Positions 2,191 to 64,000 of a DNA stretch of 64,000 bases are shown piece after piece. The stretch is taken from IMG/VR virus record IMGVR_UViG_3300021963_000021, positions 62,001 to 126,000 of that record. One strand, 5' to 3'. Within the stretch, counting starts at the first letter, position 1. Each line of letters opens with the position of its first letter. The position numbers and the translations under genes were made by a program. The notes under the pieces are model-generated. The model saw nothing but the letters and a program-made list of their open reading frames with translations. It did no database searches and was not told the origin of the DNA.

Positions 2191-5100
2191 TTATCCTTGT
2201 AAGAACAAATTCATTGCTACTGGGTAGCCATCAATACCACGAGTAAATTCAAGTTTTGTGTTAACCGTAATTTTGAACCCAGTAGTTGTTGTGATCGTAG
2301 ACCCCGATACAAATACCGAACCTGCGGTAAGTGTATTTACGTTCAAAGTACTCGAACCAGAACCAATTTGTGAAGCAATATACGCTTTAATAGCTCTCTG
2401 TGTCGGGATCACTGTATCCGAATCAGCTGTAAAGAACGGATCTGTACTGAATTCAGTGATTGTCGCACCACCTGTGCCCAATTCTACCGATCCTAGCTGC
2501 AGTTCCTGTAGACCAGCTAGGTTAAACGCACTGGCATTCAAGCTAGCTGTACCAGTTGCCTGTTCAATGGTAAACAGATCGCCAACACGGAAATTACCGT
2601 CTTGGTCGGTTGATGTAAAGAACACACGTCCACCGCCACTTTCCACTGTTTCTGAGTCTTGATCTGGGTCAGTGTATGGTAGCCCCGGATAGTTTGTGCT
2701 GGTAAAGTTCCCAGTACCAATGTCCAAAAAGTCGTGTCCAGTTAAACGACACTGTGAATATCTGATTCTAGTTTCAAAACTTTCTTCATGTGCTGGTGCT
2801 TCGCTGATCGTCAACGCCGGGCTAATTTGTAATCTAGCAGTATATGGGCCTGTTCCAGCTAGGTTAGTAACTGTAACCAGCTTGTAATAGTTATTAGGCA
2901 AGCTGGAAAATACTACGTTAGACCCTGCTACAGGCACGCTGTAAAGATCTTTAACATCAACATAACCACCAGGTTGGTAGAAATCAGCATATCCGTCGCC
3001 GGCTACTGTTGATGTAGCAGTAACCCATAGTGTACCTCTGTTGTTGAATGTCGGATTACCCAACGCACCTCTGCCTGTTCTAACAGTATGCGGTGCTTCA
3101 ACGGTGTTGTTAGGATCTGTGATTGTCATTGTTGGAGCACTTGCATAACCGCTACCTGGCTCTACAATTCTAATCTGTGTGATTTTTCCATCAGTTATAG
3201 AACATCTTGCCTGTGTAGTAGCACCGGCTACTACATATCTTCCTGTTGTTCCTGTTGTATTGCTGATCAGTGCCCAACGAGGTGTCCAGTTTGTGTTTCC
3301 TAGAGCAGGTTTAGCGTAACGTCCACTGGTTACAGTTCTAGTAGACCAAACTATACCGTCTGGTGAAGTCCAAATTGAAGTACCTGCGGAATCTATACGT
3401 GTTCCCAAGAACACACCTTGACCATAAGAAACTCTGTTTGCGCCCGGAGGGCTAGAAACTGTGGTCCAAGTAGTACCATTAATACTATAAGCAGCCGCAG
3501 TACCTGTTGAGTTTACCGCAACAAATCTATTATTTCCAAATGTCACGCTAGACCATGTTGTGCTTGCTGGCATAGTAGCAGTGACCCAAGTAATACCGTC
3601 TAAACTGTAACCTGCTCCGTTTGTACCAGTAGCTACAGCAACAAACTTGCCTGCGCCATAAGTGATAGAAGTCCATGTAGTCACAGAGTTTGGCAACGGA
3701 TTAGCACCGTTTGCCCATGTAGTTCCGTTTGTAGAAATCACCGGAGTAGCAGAATCGCCCCTGACCCCAATAAATCTACCATTACCAAACGCCACAGCAT
3801 TGTAGGTTCCAGTCTGTGGCAACGAAGCAGTTGTCCATGTTTCACCACCGTTTGTTGAGTATGCTGCTGTCGTTGAACCTGTATTTGGCAATGCTACTGT
3901 ATACACAGTAGTTGATATCGTTCCACTAGCTACACTGGACCATGCCTGAGCAGCTGGCAATGTGGCGCTGGTCCATGTCACAGCATCTCGACTGTACATA
4001 CCCGAGCTTCCGCTTACTGGTACAGCAACATAGTTGCCACCACGGCCGTAGCCAGTATAGGTAAATCCTGTAATCACTCCGGCAGGCGATGTGACATTTG
4101 TAACTTTAATAGTTAGATTGTTAGTTGTAGCAGTACCATTTAAGCTGGTACCTGCGATTGTTAAAGTATTTCCGACGGCATAACCAGTACCACCGGCATT
4201 TAATGTAACAGTATATACTAGCCCAACCCTAACAACATCAAAAGTCGCCAGTGTGCCTGCACCGCCGGTGGCTGCTACTGCGCTATGACTAGATCTTGTC
4301 TGTACATACGCTACTTCGTTTACCCCAACAGTCACAGGTAGTGTTCCGGTTACAGTGTCAGTTAATGTAGGAGCAGTAAATGTTAATCTTGGCTCTATTA
4401 CATATTGTGTAGAAGCGTCAGGTGCTGTAATTGTTGTGCCAGGGACACTGTGATCCCAGCCTGCTGTACCTGTCGATTCTTTGTAGACCTGTGCTACTTT
4501 GGTACCACTGTTATAAGAGTTAATATATCCAAACTGTGATTGACCAGTACCTGATGTTAGGAATATTCTCATTCCAACATATGCTGAACTGGTATTTCCA
4601 TCTGTGGCTGCTAGTGTGATTGAAGTAGAAGATCCAGTTTGTGCTACGTTTTCAACGCTGATATAATCTGCGCCACCGTAGTTATCTGCTGGGTCGGTTA
4701 GTCTTACTTCAAATACAGCATTGTCACGTACTTCGTTGCCTGTAGTATCAGCATTGATACCAGCACCGTTGAACGTGTACGTTGCGCTGGTATAGTCACT
4801 GCCAGCATTCAAGAACTCAACACGCTGTATTGCGCTGTTATTGGTGATAACTTTTGCGATTGCTGCTTCTTCAAATCTGTTGTTTACTGTGCCTGTGACT
4901 GCTGTTTCTGTAGGATCAACGCCTTCGGACACACAACCAAATGTACCATAAGAACTGTTACCATTGGTAGCACGTATCTTACCACCGTTTTCAGCTAGGT
5001 AACCAATGTGTCCATAATATGAGAACACAGAAACAAGCTCTGTTCTTGCTAGGTTGGTACACCATACACCAATACCATCACTTAGTACCTGTGTAAAGTC

Positions 5101-38971: not shown

Positions 38972-41584
38972 TTACCCTATTAGATTACCTGAAAGTTTTC
39001 TAGTATAGTCTATTTGTTCTCTATGTAAAGATTGACGGTCTTGGGTCAGTTGTATTAGTGTTGCCATGTTAGTGTTAAATTCAGAAATCAAATCTTGTAG
39101 ATTTACATTAGCGCCATTTTTAGCAATATTTTCCATTTGACTGATATCTAACTGAGCAGTGTCAGAAGGTGCTGCTCCCATGGTTCCTTTATTATATTTG
39201 TATATTTGTCTAGGATCTAAAACATTTTCATTAAATTCAAAACCTTTTGCTCTATAATCACCTTTGGTCATTTGGAAATGAAGATGTTTAGGAATAGCAG
39301 ATCCGTCTTTGTTAGTTCCAGTGTTACCCATGAAACCAATCATTTGATCTTTTGTTACCTTCTGTCCATTGATAGCTTCCATGGTATCTTTGCCTCGATC
39401 AGAAAGATGCATATAGATCGAAGTTAGATCAGCGTCGGGGTGATATATCTTAACCATATTTCCCTGAGGTTTACCTGTATCATAGCTGGAAGATGCTATA
39501 CCTGCAGCAATCGACCTAATAGGAATATCTGTGTCAGATTTATCTTTTGGTACTATGTCATTGCCATAGTGGTAATTGCCATTAGGGCCGTTTCTAGGTC
39601 CTACTCCGGATGTCATAACATAGTTTTCCATGTTAGCCATTGGAGTGCTTAGTCCTTCAAGTTTGCCTGAGCTGACTACTGTTGCTGTATCAGTTGTGAC
39701 ATTTCTACCCGAAGGAGTTACTACATTTCCTCCCGGCGCAGGAGCTGCCTGGGGTTTGCCTCCCGGTCCTGATACTATTCCGCCTTGAATCGGCAAGGCT
39801 TTTGCTCCTAGGAAATTAGAATCGCCTGTTATGCCTGTGACACCTAATGATTCTGCCCGTTGGACTCGTCTTGCTTTTGCCTGATTAACTTCAGCTCTTT
39901 CATCTTCAGGAGTTATTTTTCTGTCTTTATACTCACCTTCTTTGCTAAATGCTCTCATAAAAGCATATTTTGAAGTTATCATCATTCGTTCAAAAAAGTA
40001 TTCTATCTCACTTTTAATAAACTCTGTGCCTTTTTCTGATTGTAGATTAGTGAAAAAAGAATCTATAGTTGGTAGTGTTATAGCTGCTAGTTTAACTAAT
40101 GATTCGCCAAATTTTCCTAGCATTCCGGGAATATCGTATTTGCCTATCGCATCACTGAGTTTTCTAAAATAAGGAAGTAGTGCTATAATAAATTCTTTCT
40201 TAAACTCATCAAAGGCCAACGCCATGTCATTCAACAATTTTGTCAATGGACTTCGTTTCTTTGCTTCAGCATCTGCTGCGTCATAGGCATCAAGAGCATT
40301 GGCCACAGATGTTTTTCCATCTCTAGTAAATCTTATAAAACTTCCTGTAGCACCCGATAACGCTCTATTCAGTTCGTTGTTGCCGCCATCCATTTGAGAA
40401 TAGACCTTTAGAATCCTGTCATTGGCCTTGACAAAATCTATAATCCCTGCTGCGTTATCTCCGTAGGCTTTTCTTAGTATAGGTTCAAATTGTTCTACAG
40501 TCACAGTAGCATCTTTGGCTTTTGCCAGAATCTCTTGCATAGATATACCTGACTTGGCGATGCTTTGTTTTAGTATTTGAGCCTCCATGCCAAACGGTTC
40601 CATGCCTAGTGCGTTGGCTTTATAGAGTTCTGCTCCTGCTTTTCCGTACAAACCTGTGAACATAGCCAACGCTGCGTCCATTTTAGCTGCTCCAAGTGGA
40701 CCTTGTTTGATTTTTTCTCGTTGGTACTGTAGATCCTGTGTAGCCACAGCCATTTGTTCTTCAAGCTGAGCTGCTGTTACACCAGTGATCTTTGTTAATC
40801 TTTCTAGATTTAATTGATAAAATCCAAACTGTTTATTAAAATCAGCGTCAGATAATTTTTTTCTATCGGCTCCTCTCATAGTATTCTTCATGAAATTCAT
40901 TTGAGCTTCAGAAACGTCCTTGGCACTGTAACCAATCTGTCTAAAGATTTCTCGACCAACACCGCCTTGCTTGTTTATAACTTCATTGTAGTGCGCAAAG
41001 TCTTCAGCACCTTGTGTAACTGTGCCGCCAAATCCTGCTAGAAATTCTGAGTTTTTGTTTATAATGCCTACAAAATCATCCAACGACAAGTAAGTCCTTG
41101 CCGCTGCTAATCTCATTTCTAAAATGCTGTTGTTAAATGTTGCGCCCGATCTGCTGGATTTTTTAAGACTTTCGTTCCAAGATTCAAATTGCTCTATGGT
41201 GTAAGATATCGTATCGCCAAATATGCCCAGCACTCTACCAAATATTGGTATTTCTTTTAAAACTTGATTGCTTAGTACACTGGTATACGAACTGATTTTA
41301 TCATTACCCGCAGCCATAAGCCCAGCAAATGAACCCATAGCACCTACAACGTTACCTATCTGATCTGCTACAGCACCTGCGGCTTTGCCTAGTACCGAAG
41401 CCGGACTTACTGAGCTGCCCGGAGCTTCGGCGGGTCCGGAACTTGAAGAAGCATTAGACCTCTTCATTCCTTTGTTCATATTGTTTACACTACGAACTAT
41501 TTCCTGTAAGGTAGCCTCACTGGCAGCATTCATGATTGTGCCGGATAATTGATTACCTAATATTTCAACTTTTGTATTAGCCAT
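38972..41584 (-). CDS. Tape-measure-like protein, paralogue A, with M23 metallopeptidase domain
   Basis: Long helical region; YHYGND (HxxxD), GNMVKIYH, YMHL, IGFMGNTG and PKHLHFQ (HxH) M23 motifs. Confidence 0.8.
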   Translation of the reverse strand: MANTKVEILGNQLSGTIMNAASEATLQEIVRSVNNMNKGMKRSNASSSSGPAEAPGSSVSPASVLGKAAGAVADQIGNVVGAMGSFAGLMAAGNDKISSYTSVLSNQVLKEIPIFGRVLGIFGDTISYTIEQFESWNESLKKSSRSGATFNNSILEMRLAAARTYLSLDDFVGIINKNSEFLAGFGGTVTQGAEDFAHYNEVINKQGGVGREIFRQIGYSAKDVSEAQMNFMKNTMRGADRKKLSDADFNKQFGFYQLNLERLTKITGVTAAQLEEQMAVATQDLQYQREKIKQGPLGAAKMDAALAMFTGLYGKAGAELYKANALGMEPFGMEAQILKQSIAKSGISMQEILAKAKDATVTVEQFEPILRKAYGDNAAGIIDFVKANDRILKVYSQMDGGNNELNRALSGATGSFIRFTRDGKTSVANALDAYDAADAEAKKRSPLTKLLNDMALAFDEFKKEFIIALLPYFRKLSDAIGKYDIPGMLGKFGESLVKLAAITLPTIDSFFTNLQSEKGTEFIKSEIEYFFERMMITSKYAFMRAFSKEGEYKDRKITPEDERAEVNQAKARRVQRAESLGVTGITGDSNFLGAKALPIQGGIVSGPGGKPQAAPAPGGNVVTPSGRNVTTDTATVVSSGKLEGLSTPMANMENYVMTSGVGPRNGPNGNYHYGNDIVPKDKSDTDIPIRSIAAGIASSSYDTGKPQGNMVKIYHPDADLTSIYMHLSDRGKDTMEAINGQKVTKDQMIGFMGNTGTNKDGSAIPKHLHFQMTKGDYRAKGFEFNENVLDPRQIYKYNKGTMGAAPSDTAQLDISQMENIAKNGANVNLQDLISEFNTNMATLIQLTQDRQSLHREQIDYTRKLSGNLIG

Positions 41585-41625
41585 TGTGCTCTACCAATAT
41601 TAAAAACACCAGAAATCTGCGTACA

Positions 41626-41652
41626 TAAATAATTCTGATACTACTATTTATA
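41626..41652. promoter_or_regulatory. Face-to-face late promoters for the divergent gp26-like and tape-measure genes
   Basis: TAAATA on + at 41626-41631; TATAAATA on - at 41645-41652. Confidence 0.65.
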
Positions 41653-41663
41653 GGTGTAAAAAC

Positions 41664-42584
41664 ATGCCAGATTTTGATCCAACTAATTCAGGAATTAGAC
41701 AGAAGCTAGGAGAGGCCGTGCCCACGCAAGCTGCTGCCACTAATCCGTTGGCTTCGTTTTTTAGACAGCCAAAACTTTTTATTTCGTTGCCTAGCAAAGG
41801 CAGATACTACCCAGCAGGTTCTCTAGACACTACAGAAACAGGAGAACATGCGGTATTTGCTATGACAGCCAGAGACGAGTTAATTTTTAAAACTCCAGAT
41901 GCTCTAATGAACGGTCAAGCTACTATAGAAGTAATCAAAAGTTGTATTCCAACTATCAAAAATCCATGGGTAATACCTAGCATTGACGTTGACGCTATTC
42001 TAGTAGCTATCAGAATGGCTACCTACGGCACAGAAATGGATGTAACCACAGGCTGTCCCAAGTGCGGAAACAGCAACGATTTTGCTGTGGACCTTAGAAC
42101 AGTTTTAGATAAGCTAAATCAAATCACTATCACAGAACAGGTAGAGATTGGCACAGACATGCTGATTCATCTAAGACCGTTAGACTACAGTCAAATGACA
42201 AAGACAGCTTTAAAAACTTTTGAACATCAAAGAATTTTTAACATCGTCAATGACGAATCCATGACTGAGGAAGATAAACTTAAGATGTTCCAAGAAAGTT
42301 TTATCAAACTCACAGACATCACTATCGATTCGGCTGTAAACTGTATCAGTAAAATTGAAAGCTCAGCTGGCAGCACAGACAATCCAGTTTACATCAAAGA
42401 GTTTTTACAGAAAGCTGATAAGTCAGTGTTCCAAAAAATCAATGAAGCTATCAACAAGTCCGCTGAAAAAGGTACAATGAGCTCGTTTTCAGCTACCTGT
42501 CAAAATGCCGAATGTAAACATGAGTGGAATGTGAACCTTACTATGGATCAATCGGATTTTTTCGGTCAAGGCTTTCGCAACTAA
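41664..42584 (+). CDS. gp26: Baseplate hub assembly protein / tail assembly chaperone, gp26-like
   Basis: LPSKG..Y, MTARDE, D.DAILVAIR.ATYG, CPKC and C..C motifs, ends DFF. Confidence 0.75.
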   Translation: MPDFDPTNSGIRQKLGEAVPTQAAATNPLASFFRQPKLFISLPSKGRYYPAGSLDTTETGEHAVFAMTARDELIFKTPDALMNGQATIEVIKSCIPTIKNPWVIPSIDVDAILVAIRMATYGTEMDVTTGCPKCGNSNDFAVDLRTVLDKLNQITITEQVEIGTDMLIHLRPLDYSQMTKTALKTFEHQRIFNIVNDESMTEEDKLKMFQESFIKLTDITIDSAVNCISKIESSAGSTDNPVYIKEFLQKADKSVFQKINEAINKSAEKGTMSSFSATCQNAECKHEWNVNLTMDQSDFFGQGFRN

Positions 42585-42634
42585 CAATCCCCGAAGTCCT
42601 AGCGGAGACGAAAGCCCTTGATGATCAAGCTAGG
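42557..42634 (+). other. Putative programmed -1 ribosomal frameshift signal (slippery heptamer plus pseudoknot)
   Basis: T TTT TTC at 42557-42563 in the gp26 frame; stem 1 GGCTTTCG/CGAAAGCC (42570-77/42609-16); stem 2 CCTAGC/GCTAGG (42598-603/42629-34). Confidence 0.7.
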
Positions 42635-42793
42635 TCGATCAAACTTGAAGCTATGAGAACTGTTTGGTATATGCGTGGCGGTATTAGTTTTGCTGAAAGC
42701 ATGAACCTCAGCCACGATGAACGTCAGTTAGTCAGTGATATAGTCAAAGACAACATGGACATAACCAAGCAAAGTGGCTTGCCCTTCTTCTAA
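42563..42793 (+). CDS. gp51-like baseplate hub assembly domain, probably expressed as a -1 frameshift extension of gp26
   Basis: WYMRGGISF.E.MNLS..ER motif; lies in the -1 frame overlapping the gp26 end; no convincing SD/start of its own. Confidence 0.65.
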   Translation, partial: RSRLSQLTIPEVLAETKALDDQARSIKLEAMRTVWYMRGGISFAESMNLSHDERQLVSDIVKDNMDITKQSGLPFF

Positions 42794-44047
42794 TTATCCA
42801 GCAGCGCCTGGAGCAGAAACCTTCTTCAGCATGTTCATGACCTTAGTTGTTGTCTGAGGATCAGCTTTTATCAATGCTGTGAACGCAGTTGCCAATGCCT
42901 GCTGTTGTTTCATAGATAGATTGCCACCGGTCATAACAGCTTTAACAGAAGTCTGTAGTAGACTTGGATCAACACCTGGTAACAGTTGAGCCATTTGTCT
43001 AGCATTTAGAGAACCTTCAACATCGCCACTGCCACCATCAGCTCCGCCGAGGCTTCCTGTGTTACCGCCAGCTGCCTGTGAAAAGCCCTGAGCAAATTTG
43101 CCCATCATGCCTTGTTTTGGTTTGTCTTGATCTAGACCCGGAGTTGTGCCTGAAGCACCTGTGTTGATGTTCTGACCTGCGCCTAGCTTGTAACTATCTT
43201 GTACAGCACGTAACAGTGCTTGGTCAATGATAGAACTTGGTAATACTTTTACATCGCCTTCTTCATCTAGTTCCATGTTTTCTAGATCTAGATTTTCAAA
43301 TGCTTTACCAAACTTGGCTTTAGCTGCTTTAAACCCACCACCTGTGGTTGCGCCTACGCCCTGTTTGGCTTTGAGTTTAGCTTTAAGATCAGCTTGTGGA
43401 TTTGCCGGCGCAGCAGCAGCTGGCTCAGCAGCAGTAGCGGCAGTTGAACCGCCAACACCTGCCAGTGATTTGATCCTTGCCAATGGATCAGTTGTTGTGC
43501 TTGGTACACCTGTTGGCACTGGATTTCCACTAGGATCAGTAACGCTGACATTGGCTTTGGGCGCAAATCCAGCAGGAGTATCTGCGGCTCCGCCGCCCGC
43601 GGCAGGAGTTTCTCCACCTGGTGGTACTTCGATATTACCAGTAGGTTCGATTTTTTGTTGAGCATCGCCACCGGCAGCAGCTTTTTTCTGTGCCATCCTG
43701 TCGCGGAATGCTGAAATGTTTGAAGAACCTTTGCCTAGAACTCCTGTTGGAGCACCAGCGTCATGACCTGCTATAATCTTTTCTACGCCCTGTGTAGGAT
43801 ATCCACTTTGTTGTAAGAACATCATCAACGCTTCGGAATTAGGTTGTTGTCCTGTTTTACCTAGGTACCTATTAAACTCTTTTCTAAGAGCAATAGCATC
43901 GTTACCAGCATCTAATACACCAGTTGATTTACTGTGTCCTAGCTTAGACGCTATTTTGCGTCCAGCACGACCAAATACTCCCATACCTGCGGGTGCTTCG
44001 TCAAGTTGTTGTAATTCAGATTCTGTTATAACGTCGTGGATTTTCAT
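42794..44047 (-). CDS. Low-complexity Ala/Gly-rich putative internal head (ejected) protein
   Basis: N-terminus MKIHDVITESELQQLDEA with I/L-x-E sites; internal RIKSLAGV resembles the scaffold C-terminus; TAAATA at 44073-44078. Confidence 0.55.
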   Translation of the reverse strand: MKIHDVITESELQQLDEAPAGMGVFGRAGRKIASKLGHSKSTGVLDAGNDAIALRKEFNRYLGKTGQQPNSEALMMFLQQSGYPTQGVEKIIAGHDAGAPTGVLGKGSSNISAFRDRMAQKKAAAGGDAQQKIEPTGNIEVPPGGETPAAGGGAADTPAGFAPKANVSVTDPSGNPVPTGVPSTTTDPLARIKSLAGVGGSTAATAAEPAAAAPANPQADLKAKLKAKQGVGATTGGGFKAAKAKFGKAFENLDLENMELDEEGDVKVLPSSIIDQALLRAVQDSYKLGAGQNINTGASGTTPGLDQDKPKQGMMGKFAQGFSQAAGGNTGSLGGADGGSGDVEGSLNARQMAQLLPGVDPSLLQTSVKAVMTGGNLSMKQQQALATAFTALIKADPQTTTKVMNMLKKVSAPGAAG

Positions 44048-44543: not shown

Positions 44544-44978
44544 TTATTTTGCCTTTTTATGTTCTTCTAGACGCTGTCTAAGTATGTTTGAGCCGCCAAC
44601 TCTGACGTTTATAATGCCATTATAATAGTCATCTGTTTCTAAAACTCTGCGCTCGAACTGCTCTCTAGCTTCAAGATAGCTCATTTCTGCCTTGGATTTA
44701 CAAAGATAAAGTATTTCTCTAGTGAAGTTTTCCGGACCTAATGCTTGGACGTCTGCGTTTAACCTATCAGATGAGCCGAAATAGTCGCGCCAATCGCTTT
44801 CTACTACAGATCTTCTTTTAAGTTTTTTGCCTTTGAGTGGAGGTTTAGTACGTTTGAATTGTGCTAGTTTCTTGCCTATGTACTTTTGCCCGGATTTAAG
44901 ATTCGTGATGAGATAAACAAAGCCAATGTAGCCTTCGGGTATTTCTTCTACGGGTTGATTTTGATATGTCCAAAGCAC
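44544..44978 (-). CDS. Stand-alone GIY-YIG (Seg-like) nuclease, catalytic domain only
   Basis: GFVYLITN...KYIGKK, YFGSS, FTREIL, conserved E (YLEAREQ) and YYN; 144 aa; GTG start 5 nt after TAACTA. Confidence 0.85.
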   Translation of the reverse strand: MLWTYQNQPVEEIPEGYIGFVYLITNLKSGQKYIGKKLAQFKRTKPPLKGKKLKRRSVVESDWRDYFGSSDRLNADVQALGPENFTREILYLCKSKAEMSYLEAREQFERRVLETDDYYNGIINVRVGGSNILRQRLEEHKKAK

Positions 44979-45209
44979 TCACTTAGTTATTTTTGGTGGT
45001 CTGCCTAGTTTGCCTTTTCTGGCTGCTTTACGTTCTTGCCTTTTGTTTTGTATCTCTACTCGCCTTGTGCTTGCCTCATTGCGTATTTCTGAAAGCCAAT
45101 ATCGTGCCTTAATAGCTGCTTCGTCTGAGCCTCTGTATTCAAAGCGTTCCTGCCACTTAAAGTATTCTTGGAACGCTTTGATCATTCGATCGTGTGTTTC
45201 TGTGGTCAT
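44979..45209 (-). CDS. Small basic protein, Hc1/histone-H1-like with AT-hook-like tail
   Basis: F...G...AA.KAR..L.EI......RR.EI pattern; C-terminal RKGKLGRPPK. Confidence 0.5.
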   Translation of the reverse strand: MTTETHDRMIKAFQEYFKWQERFEYRGSDEAAIKARYWLSEIRNEASTRRVEIQNKRQERKAARKGKLGRPPKITK

Positions 45210-46984
45210 CCTACGATATCAATGTCATTACTGTAACTAGTAAAGCCATTTTCCTTGATAACTTTAAGAACTTGATTTACACGGCTGGTCAAATCATCTC
45301 TATGTGAAATCAAGAACACATTCTTATCACGCTCACGTGTCATTTTCTTAAGAACCGCAATAGAACTTTCAACACCGCTGGCATCCATGCCTGAATCAAC
45401 AAGCTCGTCGATAAACAACAGATTAATACTTTGGTATAGATTCTCCCAAACATCGCGGAATGCCCAGCTCATGCTTAGGATCAATCTATTGCGCTCACCT
45501 CTTGACAGATTATCAAAGTCTAGATCTTGTCCTAGCTGTGTGATTATCACAGTTAGATCGTTTTGGAACTCTACAGTATGTGGCAATCCGATGCGATCTA
45601 GATAGTAGGTTAATCTAGTATTGAGATAATTTAAGTTTTGATCAATAATACGTTTACGAACAAAACTGTCTTTACTGGTTAACAGCTTATGAAGGAACTC
45701 TTGGTGATCCTTAACACGGGTTAACTCATTGATTCTACCCCAATCAAGTTCCTGTACTGCTGTGTTTTTAAGTTCTTCTATCTGATCTTCGTAGGGATCA
45801 GCTTCAGCTATCTTGTTTGCCAGTTCTTTTTCAAGACCGCTAAGAGTATTCTTGTGATTATAAGCATCATCGATGCTGTCATAATGTACAACTGGCTGAT
45901 CTCCTACTTCGCCTAATAGGTCTAGTGCTTCTTTAAACGCAGTAATTTCGTCTTGATGCTCAGTAATACTTTCAGCGCAGTCACTGACCTGCTTGTTTTT
46001 AACAGTCAGCATCTCTTCGTGCTTGGTATCGTGTATGTCTTGACCGCAGCTATGGCACTTGTGTTCGGCCAATAGTGCTAGTTCTTTGTTAAGCTTCTCA
46101 AAGTTCTTTTGATCTTTATCTAACACAGCATTGCTCTTAGCGATTAATGCTAGAATGTTGTCTACTTCTTTCTTTTTCTTAGTCCATTCACTGAGATCTT
46201 TTTGTTTTGCGATCTCACTGTCAATATCAATAGTGCTTAGAACACGTATATTTTTTTCTAACTGTAGAATAACATCGCCTTTGGTAGATTGCCACAGGCG
46301 CTGTTTACGTTCTAGACTTTCGATGCTCTGTTGTACTTTTTCGTTTGATATCTTTACAGTTTCTAATCTAGTAGTTTCTGTTTGGATAAGATCTTTAGAA
46401 ATACGAATAGAATCTTTTAGCAGTTCTGCTTTTTCGCTTAGGATAGTTATACCTAGTAGCTGTTCTATGATAGCACGTTGATCGTTGGCTTTCATAGACA
46501 AAAACGGTTCAGTATACGTGTTTAGTGCCACAAGATGTTTAAACATTTCGTGACTCATACCAAACAGACGTTCTATTTCTTTTTGCGTTTCTCTGCTATC
46601 GCCCTGACTTTCGTCCTGATCGTCAGTTTCCATAGTTTCGCCGTTGACAGCAAACTTCAATAGGTTGGGCTTGCGTCCACGTTCGATATGATATTCTACA
46701 CCGTCCTTTTCAAAGGTCACGGTACACAGCATGCCTTTGCCGTTGATCTTGTTAACAAGATTATCTTTTTTGATGTTAGTTAACGCTGTGCCGTAGATAG
46801 CATAGCTCAACCCGTTAATGATAGTAGTTTTACCTGTGCCATTACGAGCTCCGCTGTCATCTCCGCCTAGATCTAGGTTTTCGCCTAGCACTAACGTTAG
46901 TTGCCCCTTGTCAAAGTCTATGGCTTGGGTCTGATTGCCCACACTCATAAAGTTTTTAACTGTTAGATTTTTAATTTTTATCAT
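45206..46984 (-). CDS. gp46: Recombination endonuclease ATPase subunit (gp46/SbcC/Rad50)
   Basis: KNFMSVG, Walker A NGTGKTT, zinc hook CHSC, signature LSRGE, Walker B LLFIDE, ISH. Confidence 0.95.
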   Translation of the reverse strand: MIKIKNLTVKNFMSVGNQTQAIDFDKGQLTLVLGENLDLGGDDSGARNGTGKTTIINGLSYAIYGTALTNIKKDNLVNKINGKGMLCTVTFEKDGVEYHIERGRKPNLLKFAVNGETMETDDQDESQGDSRETQKEIERLFGMSHEMFKHLVALNTYTEPFLSMKANDQRAIIEQLLGITILSEKAELLKDSIRISKDLIQTETTRLETVKISNEKVQQSIESLERKQRLWQSTKGDVILQLEKNIRVLSTIDIDSEIAKQKDLSEWTKKKKEVDNILALIAKSNAVLDKDQKNFEKLNKELALLAEHKCHSCGQDIHDTKHEEMLTVKNKQVSDCAESITEHQDEITAFKEALDLLGEVGDQPVVHYDSIDDAYNHKNTLSGLEKELANKIAEADPYEDQIEELKNTAVQELDWGRINELTRVKDHQEFLHKLLTSKDSFVRKRIIDQNLNYLNTRLTYYLDRIGLPHTVEFQNDLTVIITQLGQDLDFDNLSRGERNRLILSMSWAFRDVWENLYQSINLLFIDELVDSGMDASGVESSIAVLKKMTRERDKNVFLISHRDDLTSRVNQVLKVIKENGFTSYSNDIDIVG

Positions 46985-61100: not shown

Positions 61101-64000
61101 GGACTGGCTAAAAAATATGTTCCTAGAATCTACATAGACGACACCTATGTCACTCCTACGAAAGTGATACAAGGCCATGACGGTAGTATCACTGTAGCCT
61201 ATGATGATTATAGAGATGATGTTCTTTTAGAACTTGAAAAAAGAATTTACAATAATATTAAAGAAGAATACAATCCTCAGATTTTAGATACGGATAAAAT
61301 CTATGGAGGGTATTATAGAAATTCTGTCTTTACAAAGAAAGATCTTGATAGTATTTTAGCTTCAGAGTTTTTAAAATGGTCTGCTGGTTTAACCAAAGAC
61401 ATATATGTCAACGACTACTTTGACCAAGACAATCCTTTCACATATACATATTCAAGAGCATCAGACGTAACAAGAACAGAGCAGCTACCTAAGCATTGGA
61501 GAGGTATTTACAAATACATCTACGAAACCGACAGACCCCATATCTGTCCTTGGGAAATGTTAGGCTTCAGCGAAAAACCTCTATGGTGGGAAGATGAATA
61601 CGGTCCTGCTCCTTACACCAGCGGAAATCTGTTGTTATGGGAAGATCTAAGAGATGGGGTTATACGAAAAGGTGCCAGCGCAGGCACACATCCAAGATAT
61701 GCTAGGCCCAACCTCTTACAGATAATACCAGTTGATGAAAATGGCCAACTAAAAGATCCTACAACTATTGGATGTATTGTTGACTATTCTAATAATAAAA
61801 TATCTGAAAGTTTTACATTTGGTGATATAGCACCTGTAGAAAACGCATGGAGGAAAAGCAGTTCTTATCCGTTTGCTGTACTAATCGCCCTTTGCGTACA
61901 ACGTCCAATGGAAGTAATTTCTACAAACTTTGATAGAAACAAAGTTAAAAGAAATATTATTAATCAATTAGTATCTACAGATACAAACCAGTTTATTGAT
62001 CTAGAAACGATTAAATCGTCAGTGGTTGACGGGTATACACCTGTTGGCCTATTCAGTTATGTTTTAGATTACATTAGATCTAATGCTGTTAACACAGAAT
62101 CATTATATGATTTCTTTAGTAACTATAATGTTAAGTTGTCTAGTCGCATTGGCGGGTTTGTTGATAAATCACAACAGAAATATCTATTAGACAGCAAGAG
62201 TCCGCAGAGTAAAACATCTGGAGTGTTTATTCCTCAAGAAGATTACGAGATATTTTTTAATGTAAGTTCACCATCTTCCGTGGTAACATATTCTGGTGTT
62301 ATCATAGAAAAAGTTCCTACAGGATTTAAACTATCAGGGTATGATAAGCTAGATGCTAGTTTTGTATATTATGATTATTTTGCCAGATTAGATGACCCTG
62401 CGATATCCGTTGGAGGCGTCAGCGAAAACTACTCTGATTGGACTACTGAAAAATTTTATAGCAAAGGGGCACTTGTAAAATACAATTCTAAATTTTACAG
62501 AGTCTCTCAAACACATACTAGTGGTCAAACATTTGACAGTAATCAATTTGTTGAAATTTCTACACTTCCACTTGTAGGCGCTGTTACAGCAGTTAAGAGA
62601 ACTTCTTTTGACAAGCAGACTGTGTTAACAACGCCCTATGGAACTGTTATTGAAAATATACAAGGGGTAGTCGATTTCTTGTTAGGCTATCAAGCATACA
62701 TGAAAGATCAAGGACTTGTATTTGATGATTATAATACAGATCTACAAGTTTCAAACGATTGGGAAACCAGTTGTAAAGAATTCATGTTCTGGACAACCCA
62801 TAACTGGGCCACTGGTGCTATCATATCGTTGAGCCCTGCTGCTCTAAAGATAAAAATAACAGCAGTTGGTAGCGTAGCAGATAACATATTAGATACATTC
62901 TACGACTACTCCATATTCAAAGCCGACGGAACAAAGTTATCTCCAGATGAAGTTGATGTATATAGAACCTATAATGAAATTATACTAGCACCTAGTAGTG
63001 TGACTACTGGTATCTATTATGCTAAGATTAGTTTTGTCTTAAAAGAACATGTGGTACTATTCAACGACAGAACTATATTCAATGATGTTATCTATGACAA
63101 AGGTCCTGGTTATAGACAGGAAAGAATTAAAGTTCTAGGTTTTAGAACCAGCGACTGGGACGGTGATTATACAAGTCCGGGATTTATCTATGATGTTGCT
63201 GATATTAATCCTTGGGAAAAATATACTGATTACAGACTAGGCGACATTGTACAATTTAAACAATTTAATTACGTCAGCAAGTATTTCCAGAAAGGTACTG
63301 CTGAGTTTGATAGGGCTGGATGGGAAAAACTTGATTCAGAACCGACGTCTGGTTTAGTAGCAAACTTTGATTATAAAATTAATCAAATTGAAGATTTCTA
63401 CGAAGTTGATTATCAAGGTATCAATAACGAGCAAAAAGTAATGGCTCGACATTCTATTGGTTATCAGAAACGAGAATTTTTACAAGACATGGCAGAAGAT
63501 GAAGTCAGTCAGTTTAGACTTTATCAAGGCTACATCAAAGAAAAAGGCACATACAACGCCATAACTAAGGTGTTTGATAAACTTAGTAGAATCCCCGAAG
63601 ACTCTGTAGAGCTTAAAGAAGAGTGGGCATTCTTGTTAGGAAGCATGGGCGGCACAGAGCAGTATAATGAAATAGAATTTTCTTTGAAACAAAATGCTCT
63701 TAAATTAAATCCTCAACCAGTGCTTTTAAATGAAAGAAACACATCAAAATCTGAATATCAAAATTATATTATTGTAAAGCAGAACGATTATACTGTAGGC
63801 AATAACTCTTATAAATTCCCAGTCAAGGATTATCCTGTAGGCAATTGGACTGCTGGATATGTTTACGCAGATGATGTTGATTATGTAGTTTCTTCATTCG
63901 CAGACATTTATCTACAAGATGTGACCACCTATAAAAACGGTCAAACAACTTGGGTGACATTTACAGATACTGGGTGGAATGTTTTAAGATATAGAATCAG
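58185..64000 (+). CDS. Giant baseplate wedge protein, gp7-like (>1930 aa, truncated by window end)
   Basis: Absent from the ORF track, consistent with no stop in the window. ATG at 58185 just after the gp6 stop: MDKKVFKQSGLPVRKTVDLLPEIF...YQLEPG...IDWDKFVNYREYYWLPQGP. Confidence 0.75.
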   Translation, partial: MDKKVFKQSGLPVRKTVDLLPEIFKSPSNDKFLGATLDALVQPGSLERLTGYIGRTYGKTYNSKDVYLDITPSLRHSYQLEPGVTVDKNNRTNRFYDYIDFKNQQKYFGSKQERDDLVTGQEHYTWNPPIDWDKFVNYREYYWLPQGPDAVQVLGQGQEVVSSYRVRSDGQNEWLFIPDGLSRNPNIILYRGQTYEFNVNAPGDPFYIRTSNVLGGQSDFNRGVTNNGAEVGKIIFTVPNDAPDLLYYQSSNNINRVGTFRIFNVTDNTYLDVEKEILGKDKYTSTNGVVFSNGLKVEFTGKTTPEKYANGYWIVEGVGTDIRLVKFSDLELPPISNPNQIIVFDDGGFDEQPFDDATSYPSTKDYITINRSSKDKNPWSRYNRWFHRSVVEYAAQLNDSVAQVSESNRAKRPIIEFSSGLQMFNHGTVAKDSVDLIDDFTTDVFSNIEGTAGYNIDGIDLADGMRVLFTADTDSLVKNKIYVVNFITVQTSTNVTNRKQISLVEAEDSNTQPGEGLIVRLGKTNAGRMYHFDGSDWNKSQTKTAINQSPLFDVYDSDGISLSDSSKYGTSSFEGTKIVNYKVGTGVVDSELGFPISYLNIENSGDIVFEVSWETDKFVSRIGTTSTSYEIAANFYRVNKSLSDYSYGNGWALFDNEYYQPIVQVKTISESTDRIVFETCFWKTATREEIFFYLNGKKINDAWTSEINTTRTFVFNKTFAVGDVLTIKVYTDAEPDQGFYEFPVGLEKNPLNQDVKEFSLGQVNDHLGSMVELSKEFNGIFPGSSNLRDISDYRNYGRRFFKHSGISSIALPMLCDKTFNIVKALRFASYEYEKFKNTLLIKVLDLPYDDGSVVDLIEAAISKLTSVKTKNAPFANSDMIGSGAFKSIKYTVEDEGITTFALSSKFDLTVPSDKAVYVYINDNQLLHEVDYEFDSTFGFIKIKKPLVEDDVIEIREYYSTSFNFIPQTPTKLGLAKKYVPRIYIDDTYVTPTKVIQGHDGSITVAYDDYRDDVLLELEKRIYNNIKEEYNPQILDTDKIYGGYYRNSVFTKKDLDSILASEFLKWSAGLTKDIYVNDYFDQDNPFTYTYSRASDVTRTEQLPKHWRGIYKYIYETDRPHICPWEMLGFSEKPLWWEDEYGPAPYTSGNLLLWEDLRDGVIRKGASAGTHPRYARPNLLQIIPVDENGQLKDPTTIGCIVDYSNNKISESFTFGDIAPVENAWRKSSSYPFAVLIALCVQRPMEVISTNFDRNKVKRNIINQLVSTDTNQFIDLETIKSSVVDGYTPVGLFSYVLDYIRSNAVNTESLYDFFSNYNVKLSSRIGGFVDKSQQKYLLDSKSPQSKTSGVFIPQEDYEIFFNVSSPSSVVTYSGVIIEKVPTGFKLSGYDKLDASFVYYDYFARLDDPAISVGGVSENYSDWTTEKFYSKGALVKYNSKFYRVSQTHTSGQTFDSNQFVEISTLPLVGAVTAVKRTSFDKQTVLTTPYGTVIENIQGVVDFLLGYQAYMKDQGLVFDDYNTDLQVSNDWETSCKEFMFWTTHNWATGAIISLSPAALKIKITAVGSVADNILDTFYDYSIFKADGTKLSPDEVDVYRTYNEIILAPSSVTTGIYYAKISFVLKEHVVLFNDRTIFNDVIYDKGPGYRQERIKVLGFRTSDWDGDYTSPGFIYDVADINPWEKYTDYRLGDIVQFKQFNYVSKYFQKGTAEFDRAGWEKLDSEPTSGLVANFDYKINQIEDFYEVDYQGINNEQKVMARHSIGYQKREFLQDMAEDEVSQFRLYQGYIKEKGTYNAITKVFDKLSRIPEDSVELKEEWAFLLGSMGGTEQYNEIEFSLKQNALKLNPQPVLLNERNTSKSEYQNYIIVKQNDYTVGNNSYKFPVKDYPVGNWTAGYVYADDVDYVVSSFADIYLQDVTTYKNGQTTWVTFTDTGWNVLRYRI

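Follow-up and report, generated by a model that had tools for sequence, protein, structure and literature searches.

The window analyzed here, a stretch of 64,000 nucleotides (positions 62,001 to 126,000 of IMG/VR record IMGVR_UViG_3300021963_000021), contains a phage assembly gene whose reading very likely involves programmed −1 ribosomal frameshifting at a T TTT TTC heptamer. The slippage itself is inferred from sequence comparison, with no protein data at hand. The source genome, 364 kb in size, belongs to a jumbo phage of the RaK2/Atu_ph07 type, and no description of this frameshift in a PF12322 gene was found in the literature searched. TTTTTTC occurs 29 times in the window for 19 expected, and the nested fold of 42564-42640 (−21 kcal/mol, z = −1.46) is unremarkable. 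Such features of the window alone are within chance; the weight of the evidence rests on comparison with relatives. We compared 173 loci sharing 27-100% protein identity and representing 143 distinct junctions. The first open reading frame (ORF1) and the −1 frame piece (ORF2) were searched and folded separately, not as one read-through protein.

The zero-frame product of ORF1 (41664..42584, + strand; 306 aa) is a hub/tail assembly protein of the gp26/gp51 family that carries a four-Cys zinc ribbon as well as a C-terminal FF motif. We observed a match to Pfam PF12322 (E 9.8e-15, 55.3 bits for a gathering cutoff of 24.5), and the PHROG match was phrog_150, 'baseplate hub'. The AlphaFold2 model (pLDDT 82.5) had its best fold matches among viral BFVD models named 'baseplate hub assembly protein, T4-like' (E 2e-23, TM 0.80-0.86). 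In a comparison with 13 distant relatives, residues C131, C134, C279, C284, F299 and F300 were invariant.

At its 3' end, ORF1 reads ...GAT TTT TTC GGT CAA GGC TTT CGC AAC TAA. The heptamer T TTT TTC lies at 42557..42563 (+ strand), in the X XXY YYZ phase because 42555 is a first codon position of ORF1. As read across the relatives, it was exact in 172 of the 173 loci and in 142 of the 143 distinct junctions, the ORF1 stop following 1-11 codons downstream. The lone variant, RAS14, reads T TTT TTT and carries a longer run (T7). TTT is the preferred Phe codon (77%) and, from ORF1's own codon use, T TTT TTC is expected at only 0.066 (about 7%) of xFF contexts; among internal FF pairs, mostly TTT-TTT, only 1 of 22 was encoded TTT-TTC. 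The residue supplying position X varies (N, D, S, H, R or T), yet the X base is always T, so that the codon used (AAT, GAT, AGT, CAT, CGT or ACT) is always T-ending. The phase and the conservation of the heptamer are thereby shown.

The −1 frame runs without interruption through 76 codons to a stop (42563..42793, + strand; sense codons 42563-42790, stop 42791-93) and encodes a three-helix domain with a WYMRGG motif and a C-terminal GLPFF, a domain that ribosomes would reach only through the slip. After a slip, the reading would be FF RSRLSQL..., and the predicted long product would consist of ORF1 residues 1-300 plus 76, that is 376 aa with the junction ...DQSDFFRSR. ORF2 was found in the −1 frame without exception among the relatives, and its peptide (FF-R-x-[RK]-[LI]-L..PEEI) was conserved from the heptamer on, with or without an ATG. 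The AlphaFold2 model of this piece reached a pLDDT of 89, with helices at 9-37, 43-47 and 51-71. The ORF2 family profile gave 453 matches in the representative library; no match was found in Pfam or PHROGs, and all that the profile retrieved in a word-indexed search were hypothetical proteins without a name. The sole upstream start codon in the −1 frame of the window is GTG 42524, which arises from conserved Glu-Trp codons of ORF1 and has no Shine-Dalgarno-like sequence before it. The starts given to ORF2 are inconsistent among gene callers. The long product was absent from all the records inspected, ORF2 being either missing (it is unannotated in the RaK2, PA5oct and Cassandra records) or given arbitrary starts.

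Downstream of the heptamer, a spacer of 6 nt (42564..42569) leads to stem 1, whose 5' arm GGCTTTCG (42570..42577) is the exact complement of its 3' arm CGAAAGCC (42609..42616), all on the + strand. Within the loop of stem 1, CCTAGC (42598..42603, +) is complementary to GCTAGG (42629..42634, +), and the two are proposed as the 5' and 3' arms of a pseudoknot stem 2. Duplex energies were −11.3 kcal/mol for stem 1 and −8.1 kcal/mol for stem 2, and the loops of 20, 5 and 12 nt are long. In the relatives, the hairpin begins 3-6 nt past the heptamer; in Atu_ph07, a strong hairpin begins at 18 nt and a weaker outer helix at 6 nt. We named the helix by hand and then counted pairs with offset controls in 111 sequences. 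Hairpin cells were paired at 81%, compared to at most 54% with a slid partner, and none of 500 shuffles was as good. Pair 6-35 was AT in 48 sequences and GC in 39, and pair 7-34 was GC in 69, AT in 25 and GT in 14. RNAalifold found no consensus structure in the 111 ungapped sequences, and a search of Rfam matched no family. Within the clade of the window (9 sequences), stem 1 extends to 10 bp and is 92% paired, with double changes such as A-U/U-A and others. Part of the conservation of the stem arms is owed to the protein, because the arms lie in coding sequence. These counts show that stem 1 is supported by compensatory base changes; its stimulatory effect is inferred.

The evidence for stem 2 is thin, since it comes from those 9 sequences only. 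There, 83% of its cells were paired, compared to 69% for a nested inner stem considered as an alternative, which we rejected. Both sides had changed in 4 of the 6 pairs, and the pair at columns 45/75, which joins two synonymous third positions, was A-U, U-A, G-C or U-G in 8 of 9 sequences. For three of the six pairs, conserved Leu, Ala and Arg/Lys codons dictate the bases. Between an H-type pseudoknot and a plain hairpin, the data do not clearly favor either.

A first reading of the window from sequence alone had proposed most of these elements and, the pseudoknot apart, they held. The position and phase of the heptamer were confirmed and its conservation in homologues was verified; the translation bore out an open −1 frame of 76 codons with WYMRGG and predicted products of 306 and about 376 aa. 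The frame does lack a good start, GTG 42524 being the only candidate. The coordinates of the 8-bp stem and its 6-nt spacer were confirmed and the stem passed the covariation check, while for the pseudoknot we could confirm the arms and a pairing better than the nested one, but on a thin sample. Homologues lacking the heptamer and the overlap, with a conserved independent start for ORF2, would have refuted this reading; they were not seen among the relatives.

Head-to-head with ORF1 lies a gene for an 870-aa protein (38972..41584, − strand) with a C-terminal M23 peptidase domain (PF01551, E 8e-13), a putative tape-measure or hub protein, beyond which are portal and head genes. The same neighbor stands head-to-head in RaK2, PA5oct, BF, PBECO4, GAP32, XbC2 and SCTP-2. 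Its counterpart is annotated in RaK2 as similar to a tape-measure protein, and in PA5oct it is a virion protein by MS. The similarity of the 870-aa protein to the RaK2 counterpart is weak and colinear (E 0.004), and BLASTP against T4 gp29 found nothing. That this neighbor is the tape measure, and the client of the ORF1 body, is only presumed. A T4 late promoter motif, TATAAATA, was considered in the divergent intergenic region and set aside, as it is not enriched (3 copies in the window for 5.9 expected).

Other phages encode the ORF1 body and the ORF2 domain as one uninterrupted protein. About 20 of the top 150 profile matches were in-frame proteins of 319-351 aa made of a PF12322 body and ORF2, one of which aligned, in two pieces, over both ORFs of Atu_ph07. 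In each of the four places examined (L181, L186, L188 and L189), a short PF12322 paralogue directly precedes the fusion gene. Unlike the window, these uncultured tandem-pair phages have two genes and no frameshift: the long gene joins the ORF1 body to the ORF2 domain at a junction ..F-R-x-K-L-I.., and the short gene ends near FF, without the zinc-ribbon cysteines in three of the four. One of them, L189, is a 327-kb contig with the gene order of the window, namely portal, large divergent protein, short and long pair, GIY-YIG gene and gp46-like gene. These natural fusions and two-gene equivalents are shown directly.

The same short and long pattern is found in T4, where gp26 (215 bits) and gp51 (177 bits) both belong to PF12322. 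The T4 proteins are shorter than those of the window (208 and 249 aa) and come from two separate genes, paralogues that lie divergently in T4 and in tandem in RB16 and lack a slippery site. T4 gp26 ends at the FF motif, as does the short product of the window, with FF encoded TTC TTT and no ORF2 downstream. In T4 gp51, the chain goes on through ..F-K-L-L-x-N-P-D-E-I.. to a helix region at the C-terminus; the junction motifs resemble ORF2 by eye, the extension being about 48 aa compared to 76 aa for ORF2. Using a gp51 alignment assembled from GenBank records, hhalign gave only a weak match with the ORF2 profile (E 5.9e-4, probability 29%; ORF2 39-70 with gp51 222-253). The match of ORF2 to the single T4 sequence was also weak (E 0.06), and when the T4 gp51 C-terminus was used in a region-restricted search, no more than 3 close homologues came back. 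A 2010 review (PMC3004832) counts gp26 and gp51 among the chaperones of hub assembly and states that particles contain no gp51; in one GenBank record, gp26, gp51 and gp28 all bear the name 'tape measure protein assembly chaperone'.

We considered three other explanations. The best of them, that ORF2 is a separate small protein with its own initiation (by translational coupling to the ORF1 stop or re-initiation there, or from GTG 42524) and that the heptamer has no bearing on its expression, appears unlikely. In its favor, an ATG overlaps the ORF1 stop (ATGA) in Atu_ph07 and Phosso, where a separate ORF2 is also possible; an ATG stands right after FFR in 7 of 83 junctions and others about 12 codons in; the window has its GTG in the −1 frame; and annotators and gene callers treat ORF2 as a stand-alone gene. 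Against it, no ATG, GTG or TTG was present from the upstream −1-frame stop to codon +12 in 38 of the 83 junctions, nor any start codon up to codon +30 in 17 of them, and the existing starts are not conserved in position. L017 and L021, which are closely related to the window (67% identity), meet a −1 stop within 2-5 codons on the upstream side and have no start codon ahead of +42. The conserved Glu-Trp of ORF1 imposes the G/ATG that lies 11 codons upstream, and the −1 peptide from there to the heptamer is not conserved; peptide conservation begins at the slip site, ahead of most candidate starts. Independent initiation also leaves the invariant T at X and the spaced hairpin unexplained.

Transcriptional slippage, in which RNA polymerase would stutter on T6 and add an extra U to some mRNAs, seems to us very unlikely. 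The homopolymeric T6 run is invariant, the single variant RAS14 has T7, and bacteria and viruses are known to reach the −1 frame by transcriptional slippage on runs of T or A (PMC5009743). However, six residues are short for efficient slippage by bacterial-type polymerases, and the run is not lengthened in 172 of the 173 loci, though a longer one would slip more. The covarying hairpin lies downstream at 3-6 nt, a spacing typical of ribosomal frameshifting, whereas the stimulators of transcriptional slippage act from upstream RNA, and the codon phase is exactly X XXY YYZ. Finally, the absence of any recoding, with the heptamer a by-product of Phe-Phe in AT-rich genomes and ORF2 unrelated or decaying, can draw on the FF invariant in the protein (T4 gp26 included), the preference for TTT and the frequency of TTTTTTC in the window, but it is all but excluded by the gap between the roughly 7% predicted by codon usage and 142 of 143 junctions, by the single TTT-TTC among 22 internal FF pairs and the TTC TTT of T4, and by an ORF2 that is a well-conserved family with 453 matches and a confident fold and is fused in frame to a PF12322 body in other phages.

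Programmed −1 ribosomal frameshifting remains the explanation that we prefer. Most ribosomes would reach the ORF1 stop and release the 306-aa gp26-type protein. A fraction would be made to pause with Phe-tRNAs on U UUU UUC (42557-63) by an RNA structure that begins 6 nt downstream, namely a stem of 8-10 bp that may close into an H-type pseudoknot. The paused ribosomes would slip one base back and add 76 codons, giving the 376-aa protein, made of the ORF1 body and a small three-helix C-terminal domain. The efficiency of this slip is inferred only. The short and long forms would correspond to T4 gp26 and gp51, respectively, as non-virion hub and tail assembly chaperones; their absence from the virion is likewise an inference. 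By analogy with lambda G/GT, the common body may hold the product of the neighboring gene, a putative tape-measure or hub protein, and the extra domain of the rare long form may dock the chaperoned complex onto another tail or hub component. We consider this whole account, in which one gene yields a gp26-type short protein and an extended long one as a G/GT-like chaperone pair, likely. On the chaperone role taken by itself, which is drawn by analogy and with inferred binding partners, we lean only slightly toward acceptance.

Taken together, these results would extend a known recoding rule to an unrelated protein family carried by hundreds of jumbo and aquatic myoviruses, as a case of convergent logic. 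The tail-chaperone frameshift is a classic phage recoding event from which T4-type phages stood apart, and the roles of T4 gp26 and gp51 have been vague for decades, gp51 having long been called essential with an unknown 'catalytic' function. The two genes of T4 would then be the unfused version of the frameshift arrangement. Annotation would also be corrected, for both the long product and the start of ORF2, and the roles of gp26 and gp51 would be opened to genetic testing in cultured phages (PBECO4, RaK2, PA5oct). A bolder reading, which could as readily fail as hold, is that PF12322 is the counterpart of lambda G/GT in T4-type and jumbo contractile phages, independently evolved toward a like pairing of a short form with a rare long one, with interconvertible states (a single frameshifting gene or two paralogues, as in T4 26/51 and the tandem pairs) and with ORF2 as an adaptor. 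The ORF2/gp51-extension domain would bring the hub or tube to the tape measure in its chaperoned state and, if true, this would give T4 gp51 a concrete mechanism.

The claims of the sequence-only reading about kinship fared less evenly. The gp26-like assignment of ORF1 held, by Pfam score and fold, and the joining of gp26-like and gp51-like proteins was right in a specific sense, as both T4 proteins are PF12322, but the similarity of ORF2 to the gp51 extension is weak. The term T4-like phage fails in the strict sense for a genome of the RaK2/Atu_ph07 type. The head-to-head orientation with tape-measure genes held, with the identity of the 870-aa neighbor as a tape measure only putative. The G/GT equivalence is supported as a functional analogy by the natural fusions beside short paralogues; as homology it failed, the structure comparison with tail assembly chaperones revealing no similarity. 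PDB sequence searches with ORF1 and ORF2 gave no match below E 0.2, fold searches against solved structures gave nothing below E 0.8 (ORF1) or E 3 (ORF2), and neither ORF matched a chaperone Pfam family. With no fold or sequence match to solved chaperones, the gene is analogous rather than homologous to lambda G/GT.

The likeness to lambda gpG/gpGT, whose −1 frameshift is conserved in long-tailed phages (Levin, 1993; Xu, Hendrix and Duda, 2004; summarised in PMC5009743), lies in the predicted pair of a short abundant and a rare C-terminally extended product with a common N-terminal body, in a −1 slip at a heptamer of the X XXY YYZ form, a few codons ahead of the stop of the first ORF, in the adjoining putative tape-measure gene, and in the T4 homologue gp51, which is needed for assembly and absent from the particle. 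By contrast with lambda, the family of the window is PF12322, about 300 aa with a zinc ribbon, and thus another family and fold; the slip would take place on U UUU UUC, where lambda has G GGA AAG; there is a covarying hairpin or pseudoknot on the 3' side; and the gene stands head-to-head with the putative tape-measure gene instead of between the tube and tape-measure genes. In phage P2, a contractile-tailed myovirus, the E/E+E' −1 frameshift also yields a short and an extended chaperone. The P2 protein family is unrelated to that of the window and its genes lie between the tube and tape-measure genes; its slip site, too, is a U-run heptamer.

Direct reading of positions 41500-43000, together with the ORF listing, placed the zero-frame gene ORF1 at 41664-42584 (+ strand, 306 aa). 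ORF1 belongs to PF12322 ("T4_baseplate", E 1e-14; phrog_150, baseplate hub), and its 3' end reads ...GAT TTT TTC GGT CAA GGC TTT CGC AAC TAA. Because the codons are GAT TTT TTC GGT, the slippery heptamer T TTT TTC (42557-63, +) lies in the X XXY YYZ phase. Six nt further comes the 5' arm of stem 1 (GGCTTTCG, 42570-77, +), exactly complementary to its 3' arm (CGAAAGCC, 42609-16, +), and CCTAGC within the loop (42598-603, +) is complementary to GCTAGG (42629-34, +), forming stem 2 of a proposed H-type pseudoknot. ORF2, the -1 frame extension beginning at the slip site, runs for 76 codons (FF-RSRLSQL...) to 42793 (+) and has no family match in Pfam or PHROG; the predicted products are 306 aa (zero frame) and 376 aa (with the -1 frame). 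The coordinates and numbers first put forward in a sequence-only reading all held. By themselves, the window features are unremarkable: the window holds an excess of TTTTTTC, at 29 copies (19 expected; 0/100 shuffles reach 29), and the nested fold of the downstream region has z = -1.46. Many of these copies lie antisense to the genes. A GTG at 42524 in the -1 frame is a by-product of ORF1 Glu-Trp codons, and the -1 peptide from there to the heptamer is not conserved.

The window belongs to a 364-kb IMG/VR contig, whose isolated relatives are the jumbo myoviruses Atu_ph07, Phosso, RaK2, GAP32, PBECO4/121Q, BF, PA5oct and SCTP-2 (27-37% identity). The comparison drew on 173 loci, taken from phages in GenBank, from IMG/VR and from metagenomes, with 143 distinct ORF1/ORF2 junctions. 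An in-frame T TTT TTC was present in 172 of the 173 and T TTT TTT in one, against an expectation of 0.066 from ORF1 codon usage (TTT 77%, third-position T 37%); internal FF pairs were TTT-TTC in only 1/22. Six different amino acids (N, D, S, H, R, T) are specified by the codon that gives the heptamer its leading T, yet the third base of that codon is always T; selection is at the nucleotide and not the protein level. In every locus compared, ORF2 is in the -1 frame relative to ORF1; the ORF1 stop falls 1-11 codons past the heptamer, and a stop 1-13 codons before the junction usually closes the -1 frame upstream. Conservation of the -1 peptide (FF-R-x-[RK]-[LI]-L...P-E-E-I...WYMRGG...) begins at the slip site. 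No ATG, GTG or TTG was found up to codon +12 in 38/83 junctions, or up to codon +30 in 17/83; an ATG at the junction was seen in only 7/83, and two window-clade loci (L017, L021) have no usable ORF2 start. ORF2 starts from gene callers are mutually inconsistent, and among 11 GenBank records examined a join annotation was always absent and ORF2 was left out of three. Heptamer conservation, proposed earlier as a check, was therefore confirmed, and a conserved independent ORF2 start, named as a possible refutation, was not borne out. Taken together, these results make a programmed -1 frameshift between ORF1 and ORF2 very likely, the slippage itself being inferred without protein or efficiency data.

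We then considered the 75 nt after each heptamer, folded across the relatives. A hairpin starts 3-6 nt past the heptamer in most lineages, with differing sequences. In a large clade of 42-50% identity, the helix pairs R/K-I-L codons with E-I-L codons; over 111 sequences, pair 6-35 is AT in 48 and GC in 39, pair 7-34 is GC in 69, AT in 25 and GT in 14, and several covarying positions are synonymous sites. A formal count on 37 of the 111 gave 81% of cells paired, compared to at most 54% with the partner slid, and 0/500 shuffles reached 81%. In the window clade (nine distinct sequences), stem 1 is 92% paired, extends to 10 bp and shows an A-U/U-A exchange. In stem 2, pairing reaches 83% and 4/6 pairs show double changes, the pair joining Leu and Ala third codon positions being A-U, U-A, G-C or U-G in 8/9. 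A nested inner stem built from the stem 2 bases was less well paired, at only 69% versus 83%. No Rfam family matched the downstream structure. The expected stem covariation thus held in both clades, and the pairing and compensatory changes give strong support to a stem 3' of the heptamer. The pseudoknot held only in part: stem 2 is plausible, but the sequences are few and related and the loops long, leaving the case for and against it roughly balanced. Separately, Atu_ph07 (L001) carries at 3018-3043 a perfect 10-bp hairpin (TAGAACCGGA / TCCGGTTCTA) 18 nt past the heptamer, within a longer outer helix beginning at 6 nt (75-nt fold z = -5.7). This phage also has an ATGA start-stop overlap, and both routes of ORF2 expression are therefore possible there.

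Three other explanations were considered. ORF2 could be made by its own initiation, and this may contribute to expression in those few phages whose ORFs overlap by ATGA; as the sole account it is very unlikely, since it leaves unexplained the startless majority, the invariant X base and the spaced hairpin. Transcriptional slippage on the T6 run cannot be excluded by sequence alone, but is also very unlikely, as the run is short and never lengthens and the covarying structure lies downstream, not upstream. Chance or codon bias behind the heptamer is all but excluded by the conservation counts (172/173 versus 0.066 expected; internal FF 1/22). Overall, computational support for an ORF1/ORF2 frameshift in PF12322 is solid. 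The open-access literature searched yielded no account of frameshifting within the family; most subscription journals were outside scope, and a prior description is not excluded.

An ORF2 profile searched against 1.8 billion representative proteins recovered 453 relatives. About 20 of the best 150 are proteins of 319-351 aa with a C-terminal ORF2 in frame and the junction motif ..L-D-x-S-x-x-F-R-x-K-L-I..; one aligns with Atu_ph07 in two pieces covering both ORFs. In 4/4 genomic places examined, a short PF12322 paralogue (281-329 aa), terminating near the FF motif, immediately precedes the long gene, whose junction is non-slippery. Among these four fusion loci, absence of the frameshift thus goes with a gene pair made up of a short and a long member. 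On the 327-kb contig L189, the order (portal, large divergent protein, the pair, GIY-YIG gene, gp46-like gene) is that of the window. The short paralogue of L188 ends ..TCT TTT TTC AAT GAC TAA, keeping an in-frame T TTT TTC (1689-1695), with the -1 frame closing two codons later; this heptamer is possibly a relic of a frameshifting ancestor. Four zinc-ribbon cysteines, kept in the long copies, are all gone from the short copies of L181, L186 and L188, and are present in both copies of L189.

The divergent neighbour of ORF1 encodes 870 aa (38972-41584, -) with an M23 peptidase domain (residues 671-775), from which a tail-delivered wall-degrading activity may be inferred. In all isolates, the syntenic counterpart of its gene encodes a large virion protein, compared to a tape measure in the RaK2 record. 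Portal, protease and major head genes come next on the strand of the 870-aa gene; similarity of the 870-aa protein to T4 gp29 was not detectable. The head-to-head orientation claimed earlier was correct, and the tape-measure or hub identity of this neighbour remains putative. The 80-bp divergent intergenic region contains an exact T4 late-promoter-type TATAAATA (41645-41652, -) oriented toward the 870-aa gene; with 3 copies in the window versus 5.9 expected, the motif shows no enrichment, and its presence here may be due to chance. On the other side, an Ala/Gly/Pro-rich 417-aa ORF (42794-44047, -), without match in Pfam or PHROG, converges on ORF2 with abutting stops (42793/42794). A 144-aa ORF (44544-44978, -) resembling SegE-type GIY-YIG homing endonucleases separates the morphogenesis genes from the gp46-like recombination nuclease gene (45206-46984), and a SegE_GIY-YIG gene occupies the equivalent place in L189.

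T4 gp26 (208 aa) and gp51 (249 aa) fall in PF12322, the family of ORF1, each matching it across the full length that the two have in common. The gp26 C-terminus (..EFFELL) shares the FF with ORF1 but codes it TTC TTT, without ORF2 downstream, and gp51 goes on (..VFKLLVNPDEIF..) for ~48 further residues. This extension is weakly but colinearly similar to ORF2 residues 39-70 (hhalign E 5.9e-4, probability 29%). Naming the two ORFs gp26-like and gp51-like was thus right for the family and weakly supported for ORF2. RB16 carries genes 26 and 51 in tandem; in T4 the two are divergent. A 2010 review describes gp26 and gp51 as hub assembly chaperones, gp51 being essential yet not in the particle (PMC3004832), and the GenBank record of phage Octan gives the name "tape measure protein assembly chaperone" to gp26, gp51 and gp28. 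Precomputed Pfam annotation places a second family, PF28602, possibly the gp51 C-terminal extension, on the gp51-like proteins P0121-P0123 and on none of the ORF2 matches.

Under the frameshift model, ribosomes would decode ...GAU UUU UUC and hold Phe-tRNAs paired to UUU and UUC while the downstream structure sits at the mRNA entrance; some of them would re-pair one base back on UUU UUU and go on in the -1 frame with CGG.... By default the short form would be made, and the long form would add a three-helix domain to the short body; the ORF2 domain is confidently predicted as three helices (pLDDT 89), and in it WYMRGG is invariant and GLPFF is C-terminal. If lambda G/GT, a tail assembly chaperone pair (PMC5009743), is taken as an analogue, the body common to both forms would coat the tape-measure-like protein encoded next door, and the extension would link that protein to a further component of the tail or hub; binding partners, short:long ratio and absence from the virion are inferred. 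Equivalence to G/GT failed as family membership, as neither ORF1 nor ORF2 resembles solved chaperones in sequence or fold. The lambda genes lie between the tube and tape-measure genes, whereas ORF1 is head-to-head with its presumed client. The equivalence held as logic, the two predicted products matching lambda's short and extended forms.
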